From: Podarcis liolepis
Taxonomy: Eukaryota
Reading direction: 5' to 3' (one strand)
NCBI GenBank assembly: GCA_965112155.1
Contig: OZ218107.1
DNA: 64,000 nt
The notes beneath the pieces are model-generated. The model did no database searches. It was not told the origin of the DNA and saw nothing but the letters and a program-made list of their open reading frames with translations. Positions 8,101-11,100 of this stretch are shown here, piece after piece. Each line of letters begins with the position of its first letter. Within the stretch, counting starts at the first letter, position 1. The translations under genes and the position numbers were made by a program.

Positions 8101-11100
8101 GGAAGCAGTCTTTTGCATTTAACTCACTGGAAGGTTAATGTTCTAGAATGGCTTTAAGTATGTTTTAATAATTTGTTTTAAATTGTGCTGTTTTAACAGT
8201 CTGATGTTTGCTGCCCTAGGCTCCTACGGGAGGAAGGTTGGGATACAAATTTAATGAATAAAATTAAGCAATGATATACTTCTTGTTGGCTAGCGCAGTG
8301 TTTCCCAAACGTTTTTGGGCAACGGCACACCTGTTTACCGGAAAAAAATCTCGTGGCACACCACCATTAAAGCCCCGCCCCGTGACGTCAGCGCGCAGCG
8401 TCACGCCGGGAGGGACGCACAAAAGTTAAAGTTTTTTCCCTCCCCGCGAAGCAACGAAAGAGGGCGCCTCAACACCGGGAGGTGGGCAGGGAGCGGGGGG
8501 AGCGGCCAGACGGGCTCCGCTGGGGGACTTTCGGCTGCCGGAGGCGGGGAAGGGGCGGCTGCAGCGGACCCGGAAGTGGTTGCGCCCATCGGGGGCGGTG
8601 GGAGCGCGCCGTGCGGGTTGGTGGGTGGGGGAAGGAGAGGAAGAGGAGGGGGCGGCGGCGGCGGCCGGAGGCTGGACGGATCCGCGCAGGGACGGCGCGC
8701 GAGCCGGGAGGAGGCGCGAAGAAGGAGGCAAGGCGAGAGCAGCGCGGCTCGGGATGCATTCGGACTGCCGGCTGCTGCGCCCGAGACGCGGGGTATGGTG
8801 AGCAGCCCGGAGCGCCCGCTCCCCCGGGGGACCCGGCCGGCGCTGGCCTCCCTCCTCCTCCTCCTGTTGCTGCTCAGGCGGGACGCGGCGGCGCAGAAAG
8901 GTGCGTGCGGGAGCCCCGCCGGGAGGGGAGGGACCAGAGCCTTCCCGCCTTTCTTGCTTGGCGCCCACCCAAAAGCCCGCCGGGTTTTCGCGCCTTCCTC
9001 CAGTAGGCCGGCTGAAGCGAGCGGCGATGGGATGTGGGAGCTCGCTCGCTCGCCGCCCCGCGTGTGCTCGCCGCCGCCGCCCCGCCTCTCGCCGCCCGAC
9101 TCGCTCGTCTCCCTCCCACGGAACACAAGGCAATGTTCGGCGGCACACTAGTGTGCCGCCGAACACCTGTTGGGAAACACTGGGCTAGCGTTCTAAGATA
9201 AGTTAACGGAAGAAAGTTTATGGGAGGAATGTTTCCTCTCCTCTCCTCCCGGTGGCGCTGTTGGGACAGGACTTTGGAGCAAAGCTCTGGGAGGACCACT
9301 TCACGAAATGAACAGGAAGGGCTAAAAGCCCACCTGAGTTGGCTTACCACTTTTTTTTGCAGTAAGTACACTAGAGTTGGGGGAGGGTCACAGGGTCAAA
9401 GGAAATGTTCAGAGCAGTTCTTCCTTTCACCTCCCAAAGGTGTCTCTGTCTCCCTGGGGATGGCCCATCGTACAGGGCAGGGGTAGGCAACCTAAGGCCT
9501 AGGGGCCAGATCCAGCCCAACTGCCTTCTCAATCCGGCTCACAGACGGTCCGGGAATCAATGTTTTTTTACATGAGTAGAATGTATCCTTTTATTTAAAA
9601 TGCATCTCTGGGTTATTTGTGGGGCCTGCCTGGTGTTTTTACATGAGTAGAATGTGTGCTTTTATTTAAAATGCATCTCTGGGTTATTTGTGGGGCATAG
9701 GAATTCGTTCATTTTCTCTCTCCAAAATATAGTCCAGACCACCACATGGTCTGAGGGACAGTGGACCGGCCCACGGCTGAAAAAGGTTGCTGACCCCTGG
9801 TACAGGGGATTATCACAGACTTGCTCCCCTGATTTCAATGGATGGCAATGTGCATAAAATCATGCCCATCACTGGCAAAGTTGACTTTTCACGGAGGAAG
9901 AACTATTTGGTTTTAGAGATCTAAAAGCAACAGAAGTCCACCCAGGCTGCACAAAGCCACTTACCTGCAATAAGAGTGTTTGCTCATCTTTCTTGTATCT
10001 ATCCTCATTTTCTGGTTTTTCTCCATTCTCTGCTGGTTTTGTGGCACAGTGTTTTATACCTAGAGCAGAAATAAAAGTTGAATTGGTAAAGAAAAGCTAT
10101 GTCACTCCTTTATTTAGATGTCCCCCCCACGCCCACAATAGCCTCTCTCTTCAGATGTCTTCTTTGATGGAAATAATTTTTAGCTTCTCACTTACCTGCT
10201 TTTGAAGTATGCTTGCCACTTCGATCATGTGAATCCCTGCCCTTGATTAGCTTTTGAGGTATAGTGGCCTGCAAGGACAAAGAGAGTTTATTTTCTGCTC
10301 TGCTTTTGAGATAGGCTTCAGTAGCAACACGATGCAAAAAGCCTTAGAGGGAAAGGAATTCCAAAGTAAAATAGGCACATGACTGAATCCCAGAATGCAA
10401 CATGAACCTGTGGCTCGGTTCTCCCTGCAGCTTTATTACTCTAGCAGCCCAGTTCCTAGAAGGGCACTTCTACCCATGTTGTGTGTACAGGTCTCATCTA
10501 GTTCTGCCACCCAACAACACCAAATGGGTGGTGTTTCACTGCTGGAGTTGGGCTTCAGAATTAGGAGTCAGCTTGCCCCCGATTACCAAGATTGTGTTCT
10601 GGGTCCTAAGCGTTGCTCCCTTAGCACTGCAATGTACAGGACTGGGTCTGTATGCACCCATCTGTAGTGCTCCATGAAGTCACAAGCGAAGCACAGAACG
10701 GCAGCTGAAACAATTACAATCTTGTCTTGTGCTTGCCAGCTTCAAAGTGAACACTGTCAGAGCTTCCTGAATGCATTCAGATGTACAGAATTCAGAGAGG
10801 CAGAGAATTAGGTAGAGGGGGATGATATCCATCTGGCCGCAGAAAAGGCTTCTGCTTACAGAACGGAAGTTTTCCCTTTCTCTCCCTTCTGCTCCACAGA
10901 TGTGCTCTGGAGTGTTGGGGGACAGAAAGGAGAAGGGGTTTTTTTTTGGTGTGGGGCGTGTTGCTCAGACAAACACCGAACACTGACTAGGGTTGAGGAG
11001 GCCTAAGCCACACCTACATCCTACAATGTTGTGTGCATTTCCTGCTTTTGGAAGACAGGTGGAGCTACAACCCATTGTGCTGTCTTTTCATCCTGGGAGG

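Follow-up and report, generated by a model that had tools for sequence, protein, structure and literature searches.

A young hAT insertion in Podarcis liolepis carries a CpG-island-like cassette that may derive from the start of a host gene

Transposons with terminal inverted repeats (TIRs) that hold captured DNA, known as Pack-TIRs, number 370 in 100 animal genomes; 208 of these are hAT elements, and only four are multicopy, three in frogs and one in an alligator (Tan et al. 2021, PMC8277862). The authors found Pack-TIRs to be almost always single-copy and concluded that most arise without transposition, and they met no Pack-MULE in animal reference genomes (PMC8277862). Among their cases is Pack-hAT-N8_XT of Xenopus tropicalis, which has three copies and carries 291 bp of CAPSL's 5′ untranslated region (UTR) (Tan et al. 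2021, PMC8277862). Here we describe an 887-bp CpG-rich element at 8296-9182 of a 64,000-nucleotide stretch of Podarcis liolepis DNA (contig OZ218107.1 of assembly GCA_965112155.1; hereafter the window, meaning the whole stretch that was analysed). The element is a non-autonomous hAT insertion, and it would be a further Pack-hAT, unusual in its copy number, in its youth and in a cargo that spans promoter-like DNA, an ATG exon and a splice donor.

Related hAT elements have been described from Anolis carolinensis, where hAT-HT3_AC has the TIR CAGTGRTTCCCAAA, hAT-HT3N1_AC has the target NTCTAGAN, and the target-site duplication (TSD) is 8 bp long (Novick et al. 2011, PMC3014272). The same study reports that hAT TIRs begin with YARNG, that the related autonomous hATs of Anolis are compact, at 2-3 kb, and that non-autonomous hATs of lizards incorporate extraneous DNA (PMC3014272). 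In insects, the hAT2_NA miniature inverted-repeat transposable element (MITE) of Manduca sexta has the TIR CAGTGTTTCCCAAC and an 8-bp TSD (Zhang et al. 2013, PMC3845634).

The element in the window is bounded by an exact 8-bp TSD, GGCTAGCG, at 8288-8295 and 9183-9190, and the two copies directly abut perfect 13-bp TIRs. The left TIR, CAGTGTTTCCCAA, lies at 8296-8308 on the plus strand and starts with CAGTG, in agreement with the YARNG motif of hAT TIRs, which are short, at about 10-25 bp, and the right TIR, at 9170-9182 on the minus strand, is the reverse complement of CAGTGTTTCCCAA. From the left TIR the likeness is carried on imperfectly to about 8330, and the inverted repeat as a whole extends imperfectly to about 35 nt (CAGTGTTTCCCAA-ACGTTTTTGGGCAACGGCACAC versus CAGTGTTTCCCAACAGGTGTTCGG----CGGCACAC). 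In the 64-kb window, which is without any N, GGCTAGCG occurs only in these two copies, versus 0.48 expected by chance. We estimate that a 13-nt inverted pair within 2 kb would arise by chance about twice per window, but that the same pair together with an abutting exact 8-nt direct repeat would arise only about 3 × 10^-5 times. Composition sets the element apart as well: its GC content is 70% and its ratio of observed to expected CpG (o/e) is 0.98, versus a GC content of 36-45% and CpG o/e of 0.09 and 0.25 in the 1-kb flanks. A CpG island as defined by Gardiner-Garden and Frommer is longer than 200 bp, with GC above 50% and CpG o/e above 0.6, and the element exceeds all three values (887 bp, GC 0.70, o/e 0.98).

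To these features we added public sequencing data. Parts of 7600-9900 are contained in 24 public runs from seven organisms, and four of these runs were aligned at a likeness of at least 85%. X1 consists of DNA contigs of organism A, which is the same species or nearly so, as its flanks and the window disagree at 1 base in about 1135. X8 consists of DNA contigs of organism F, the sister species, with flanks that are about 2-4% different; X15 (contigs, probable RNA) and X23 (raw reads of stranded RNA) come from organism F as well. The contigs were built from 31-mer graphs, and single-copy DNA has a depth of about 30 for X1 and of about 45 for X8. In these runs the multi-copy k-mer depth begins and ends exactly at the TIR ends, and reads of other copies go loose directly after 9182. 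The single-copy flank contigs stop at the same places, ending at 8295 on the left in X8 and beginning at 9183 (X8) or 9184 (X1) on the right. An earlier note on this stretch, made from the letters alone, had described the CpG-rich 887-bp block with its 13-bp TIRs and 8-bp TSD, and all three are borne out by the sequence, with independent support for the boundaries from the public runs.

The target preference of the family points to the same class of transposon. For other copies, 113 RNA reads give TTCTAGAC as the flank consensus directly after 9182, and this equals the target NTCTAGAN of hAT-HT3N1_AC; the TSD of the element itself retains only the central CTAG of the nTnnnnAn / NTCTAGAN preference, although the family as a whole fits it. 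The TIR is identical to that of hAT-HT3_AC at 13 of 14 positions (CAGTGRTTCCCAAA versus CAGTGTTTCCCAAA) and differs from the HT3 type in having T rather than R at position 6. The TSD is again 8 bp, and, as with hAT-HT3N1/N3_AC, there are hundreds or more short derivatives of a Charlie-like lineage prone to horizontal transfer. This likeness rests on termini and target, and membership in HT3 is putative. The right end of the element (9169-9182) also equals CAGTGTTTCCCAAC of hAT2_NA at 14 of 14 positions, a comparison of only the 14 terminal bases of ends that recur among related hATs, and the two share an 8-bp TSD with TA at positions 4-5. Both the hAT2_NA lineage of Manduca and the hAT-HT3 lineage of Anolis are discussed as horizontally transferred, which is a lead and not evidence for the element here. 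The TSD, the TIRs and the family target consensus together uphold the earlier assignment to the non-autonomous hATs, and a Pfam search found no transposase or other domain in five open reading frames (ORFs) of the element.

The k-mer depth separates two very common arms from a much rarer interior. The left arm (8296-8445, plus strand), from which other members diverge after 8434-8447, has a depth across 8293-8446 of 3.1-3.6 × 10^5 in X1, versus about 30 for single-copy DNA, and of 4.9-6.6 × 10^5 in X8. The right arm (8986-9182, plus strand) is layered, with about 1500 copies of 9000-9066, about 7000 copies of 9067-9182, and loose ends at 9000 and 9067. Its depth is 4.5 × 10^4 in X1 and 2.1 × 10^5 in X8 across 8986-9062, and about 2 × 10^5 in X1 and 2.4-3.5 × 10^5 in X8 across 9063-9216. 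In other members, different sequences follow the loose ends after 8434, 8445 and 8447, and different sequences precede 9000 and 9067. There is also a short family form in which 8400 is joined to 9019 via 18 nt (depth 935), and which, at about 290 bp, would count as a MITE. From the depth of the arms relative to single-copy depth, we conclude that the arms belong to a MITE-like hAT family with copies on the order of 10^4 and with layered right-arm subfamilies. Within the 64-kb window, blastn found no further copies of the arms or the cargo, and the TIR-like matches seen at 104 and 58068 are no better than chance would give.

Two subterminal regions of the element hold 4 of the 11 GGCACAC heptamers of the window. 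Those in the left arm are at 8324 and 8355, and the right arm contains a 32-nt perfect palindrome (9134-9165) that includes two GGCACAC motifs. The left arm also has a GC box, CCCGCCCC, at 8374-8381, followed by a perfect palindrome of the cAMP response element, TGACGTCA, at 8383-8390. With about 10^4 left arms, the family spreads thousands of potential Sp1/CREB sites irrespective of cargo.

The cargo between the arms, 8446-8985, has the features of the 5′ end of a gene. Its promoter-like and leader part (8446-8794, plus strand) has a GC content of 75% and a CpG o/e of 1.07, with GC boxes at 8552, 8592 and 8649, an ETS site, CCGGAAGTG, at 8570-8578, and a 15-codon upstream ORF (uORF) that begins at 8754 in the leader. 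The coding part of the first exon (8795-8900, plus strand) starts with an ATG that has G at both -3 and +4 and consists of 35 signal-peptide-like codons plus one base. It is followed by a phase-1 splice donor, GTGCGT, at 8901-8906 on the plus strand (AAG/GTGCGT) and by a truncated intron-like part (8901-8985, plus strand), from which a longer family form departs after 8984. The GC boxes, the ETS site, the ATG at 8795, the 35-codon signal-peptide-like ORF and the phase-1 donor at 8901 had all been listed in the earlier note and were found again in the sequence. That note placed the interior at about 8450-9110; its left edge stands, but the right edge does not, as depth puts the right arm of the family from near 8986-9000 onward, and the GC-rich sequence of 8986-9110 with it.

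Cargo sequence is 100-1000 times rarer than arm sequence. Such rarity, and the differing continuations of other members at 8434-8447, 9000 and 9067, would fit a capture, but they would fit deletion derivatives of a long progenitor as well. In X1, a 303-nt contig with a depth of 1230 (about 40 copies) matches 8413-8715 with 0 differences. A second X1 contig, of 1477 nt and depth 212 (about 7 copies), agrees with 8747-8984 at every position and extends for a further 1239 nt of sequence unlike the element. From this different continuation, the 887-bp copy is a deletion derivative of a longer form, with its break after 8984. In X8, the cargo depth is 2000-4400 versus 45 for single-copy DNA, or 45-100 copies; these counts, like the count of about 40 in X1, come from k-mer depth. 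Cargo-bearing elements are a small, very young subfamily within a huge hAT family. The earlier idea of a captured interior holds insofar as the interior lies outside the common core of the family (7-100 copies versus about 10^4 for the arms), but a one-off capture at this locus does not agree with tens of identical copies in two species.

The insertion itself is probably absent from both X1 and X8. In X1, contig 1 (1636 nt) aligns up to 8288 with 30 letters over, and contig 4 starts at 9184. For X8, contig 20 stops at 8295, leaving 2 letters over, and contig 21, of which 20 letters are unaligned, begins at 9183, so that 20 + 8 + 2 again gives 30. An overlap of exactly 30 letters, which is k-1, in both contig pairs is what would be expected across a single TSD, and thus the site appears to be empty in both runs. 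Had the site been filled, its contig would have aligned on into the TIR. The insertion would then be very young or polymorphic, meaning that it would postdate the split between A and F and be polymorphic or private within the A lineage. Such youth agrees with zero divergence from the subfamily contigs and with the intact CpGs. The earlier note had called the insertion young, and this is borne out by the identity of the cargo to the subfamily contigs and by contig overlaps in X1 and X8 that fit a single GGCTAGCG in a near-conspecific genome and in the sister species.

The ATG exon and its donor are real, in that they are spliced in probable RNA of the sister species. In X15, 8397-8903 is matched by one contig of 1168 nt at a depth of 55, which continues with 652 nt unlike the window, and its match runs 3 nt (GTG) past the end of the exon, as would be expected if exon 2 starts with these bases. 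The X15 depth is flat at about 55 across 8447-8908 and zero across 8909-8985, where DNA of the same species (X8) is deepest (4432). Since the contig halts at the predicted donor and the intron part is without coverage, the exon must be spliced somewhere in the genome. We considered whether X15 could be low-pass DNA, as its repeat ratios are DNA-like, but rejected this in view of the zero depth in the very part where X8 is deepest. The X15 contig has private changes, 8804 A>G and an in-frame addition of 9 nt (three Leu) in the Leu run, that are in no aligned X8 DNA contig, which suggests that the expressed locus is low-copy. In X23, the exon reads are few and their first mate is mostly minus (4.1 versus 1.3, 1.0 versus 0 and 4.8 versus 0), and the arm reads run both ways; the exon reads would be plus-strand RNA if the library follows the usual convention.

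As to the origin of the cargo, we think that its probable source is the 5′ end of some host gene. When the 36-aa exon peptide was searched against 1.84 billion protein representatives, the sole match was one protein, P0001, and this protein was again the sole match when the stop-free ORF 8315-9148 was the query (region 141-196). The minus-strand ORF 8429-9166 had no protein match. Through its length filter, this word-index search is confined to proteins 0.55-1.75 times as long as the query (here 153-486 aa) and says nothing on longer proteins such as DCBLD2. P0001 is the unspliced ORF of a 1239-nt Logan contig and forms a singleton cluster from a more distant source. It is 81% identical over the exon peptide, the last 19 aligned residues being identical, and 78% identical over the whole aligned stretch of 56 residues. 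The alignment covers 8513-8932 in frame and, after shifting frame within the intron, reaches about 8955. The ETS region, the leader with its upstream ATG, the ATG itself, MVSSP, the h-region, the c-region and the donor are all retained in P0001, the n-region varies, and there is no likeness to the arms or to 8446-8512. Since P0001 is still GC-rich and open, it is more like a maintained CpG island than a decayed repeat. A Pfam scan of P0001 gave no usable match, nor did a search of the ESM Atlas or an Rfam search over 7000-11000, and neither a metagenome protein-alignment scan nor a search for the arm pattern in metagenome and viral contigs gave a match, which is in keeping with a repeat of vertebrates.

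That a host supplied the cargo, how it was captured and any activity as a promoter at the present site are matters of inference, and the proposed course of events is as follows. A segment at the 5′ end of a host gene would have been copied once, either by template switching during gap repair or by two nearby family members whose ends were used together. The resulting cassette of 540 bp, resembling a CpG island and comprising GC boxes, the ETS site, the uORF leader, the ATG, a signal-peptide-like exon, the phase-1 donor and the start of an intron, would have been carried between the arms. It would then have been amplified by transposition to tens of copies, shedding internal sequence along the way. 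For its movement the element would depend on a related transposase, acting in trans, by which the CAGTG... TIRs and the subterminal GGCACAC motifs are recognised, and a very recent cut-and-paste insertion at a CTAG-centred target would have created the 8-bp duplication seen here.

The earlier note named DCBLD2 as the parental gene, with the cassette as its promoter and signal-peptide exon 1, and we regard this as possible but doubtful. The exon ends in G at phase 1, and the GTG continuation in X15 would fit an exon 2 that starts with GT GAy, encoding Gly-Asp, which is a hint only; GDGCGH is what we take to be the start of the CUB domain in DCBLD proteins. However, these three bases would suit DCBLD1 and further CUB proteins just as well, the chance of a match over 3 nt is 1/64, and the representative search yielded no full-length protein.

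A different reading, in which no host gene would be involved, seems to us rather unlikely. Here the interior would be the family's own 5′ region (promoter, UTR or short first exon, and intron) from a longer, possibly autonomous hAT progenitor. The 40-100 relatives would then be ordinary internal-deletion derivatives, the signal peptide would be a chance GC-rich ORF, and the spliced RNA would be a transposon transcript. Some hATs, such as Tol2 and Ac, do have multi-exon genes with long GC-rich leaders. A number of observations accord with this reading and weigh against capture from a host gene. The expressed contig passes unbroken from the arm into the cargo and thus includes 49 nt of arm (8397-8445), a feature not foreseen for a simple parent that lacks TIRs. 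The X1 depth declines along the cargo from 1230 to 212, with the copy number dropping stepwise through 40x, 20x, 8x and 7x, and the contig of about 7 copies extends 1239 nt past 8984. CpG-rich interiors are general in the family (9000-9066 and GCGCACGCGC-type centres are examples), and together with the stepwise drop they also fit deletion derivatives of one long progenitor. An active source of transposase must exist as well, as the insertion appears to be absent from two genomes. No parental locus lacking TIRs was met, with no genome-wide search aimed at one. On the same side of the balance, P0001 is known from protein sequence alone, the RNA nature of X15 is a guess, and the empty-site joint is deduced from overlap lengths and not read directly.

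What speaks for a host gene over the family's own 5′ region is the character of the cargo itself. An exon whose ATG is in good context, with a hydrophobic core and AXA-like end and with a donor in phase 1, is unlike the starts of hAT transposases, and the related autonomous elements of Anolis are only 2-3 kb long. P0001 keeps exactly the ATG, the h-region, the c-region and the donor, yet it has no similarity to the arms. The expressed variant with 8804G and the in-frame 9 nt is unseen among the many X8 DNA copies. Both sets of observations might be reconciled, in a purely conjectural way, if the parental gene carries family members upstream and in intron 1, with the segment between them mobilised by their ends.

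We rejected outright the readings of the block as an artefact of assembly or as a resident CpG island whose repeats arose by chance, for although the X1 public contigs appear to cross the site without the element, a misassembly would not create a TSD, the exact TSD abuts exact TIRs with multi-copy depth edges at those very bases, the target is the typical CTAG-centred one of the family, and identical cargo contigs occur in the same run.

If the cargo is indeed from a host gene, the element resembles the described Pack-hATs (PMC8277862) in being a non-autonomous hAT with TIRs, 8-bp TSDs and an insert foreign to its family. In the worked frog case, Pack-hAT-N8_XT, the insert comes from the 5′ end of a gene, the parental copy is shown, and copies with distinct TSDs reveal transposition after capture (PMC8277862), whereas here the host origin is presumed and copies are counted by depth. 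The present element differs from them in its approximately 40-100 identical copy equivalents, in being probably missing at this site in other genomes, and in a cargo that spans promoter-like DNA, an ATG exon, a donor and the start of an intron. The extraneous DNA in Anolis hATs, by comparison, is mostly other repeats in hobo elements and not the start of a gene. Plant Pack-MULEs are likewise TIR elements with gene fragments, often multicopy and transcribed, but they belong to the Mutator superfamily, have a 9-bp TSD and long TIRs, and are found in plants. Thomas and colleagues reportedly found in 2014 that bat Helitrons captured and amplified promoters together with first exons. The element here is like them as a DNA transposon that would spread a host promoter, 5′ exon and donor to many vertebrate loci, with new starts and chimeric transcripts as possible outcomes, but it is not of their class, as Helitrons are rolling-circle elements without TIRs or 8-bp TSDs that capture by read-through at the element end.

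Cut-and-paste transposons are, to our knowledge, extinct or nearly so in most amniotes. The approximately 40-100 identical cargo copies, together with an insertion that is probably absent from a near-conspecific genome and from the sister species, suggest capture followed by real amplification and point to an active transposase in a reptile. A gene start may thus be spreading through a reptile genome, as tens of near-identical cargo copies exist. If the cargo is a host promoter plus a signal-peptide exon with a working donor, each copy would be a ready-made alternative first exon or antisense promoter, and thus raw material for exon shuffling and regulatory change. A bolder claim, that a hAT family now or very recently active in this reptile genus repeatedly captures CpG-island promoters with first exons and donors and spreads them in tens to hundreds of copies, strikes us as unlikely. 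If it were true, the family would do by cut and paste in a vertebrate what Pack-MULEs and bat Helitrons do in their hosts, and it would sow new starts of transcription, transcripts in antisense and signal-peptide exons in portable form. The spliced transcript of the sister species could then even stem from a dispersed copy that drives a host gene.

The element sits antisense in an intron of a minus-strand gene that adjoins KDM5A, so that the cassette points opposite to the gene around it. Exon-like ORFs of this surrounding gene are on the minus strand at 5379-6128 and 14579-14929, and the first of these is long and has a run of near-identical short units, including RRQDGG/RSQDSG units. A KDM5-type first coding exon with a JmjN domain (Pfam E 2.3e-16) is on the plus strand in an ORF from 23034, within a CpG-island region at 22000-23450, and its gene is head-to-head with the minus-strand gene. 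From synteny with this exon the surrounding gene is putatively CCDC77, as the CCDC77-KDM5A head-to-head layout is known from other vertebrates. At this locus the insertion would place a polymorphic, unmethylated-looking CpG island antisense within an intron beside KDM5A.

A second hAT-type MITE of 322 bp is nearby at 9478-9799, with TIRs CAGGGGTAGGCAACCT and, in reverse complement, CAGGGGTCAGCAACCT, and an exact 8-bp TSD, GTACAGGG, at 9470-9477 and 9800-9807. Within it, at 9562-9696, a 71-bp unit is duplicated in tandem, and the units are 95-96% alike. Its k-mer depth is up to 2.3 × 10^6 in X1 and 4.9 × 10^6 in X8, which puts its copy number in the 10^5 range, and further copies go loose exactly at 9799-9801 with CTCTAGA-like flanks. 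To the left of the 887-bp element, the flank at 8139-8292 resembles the tail of another squamate repeat (…gggaggaaggttgggatacaaatttaatgaataaa…) and has a depth of about 8-10 times single-copy across 8139-8215, and thus the element may have landed inside an older repeat. In X8, two haplotype contigs are present on either side of the insertion site (7908-8162 and 9183-9355), and they differ by several substitutions and small indels, such as +GGTGATGG at 8132 and +TCCTC at 9233, which points to high local heterozygosity in the sister-species individual.

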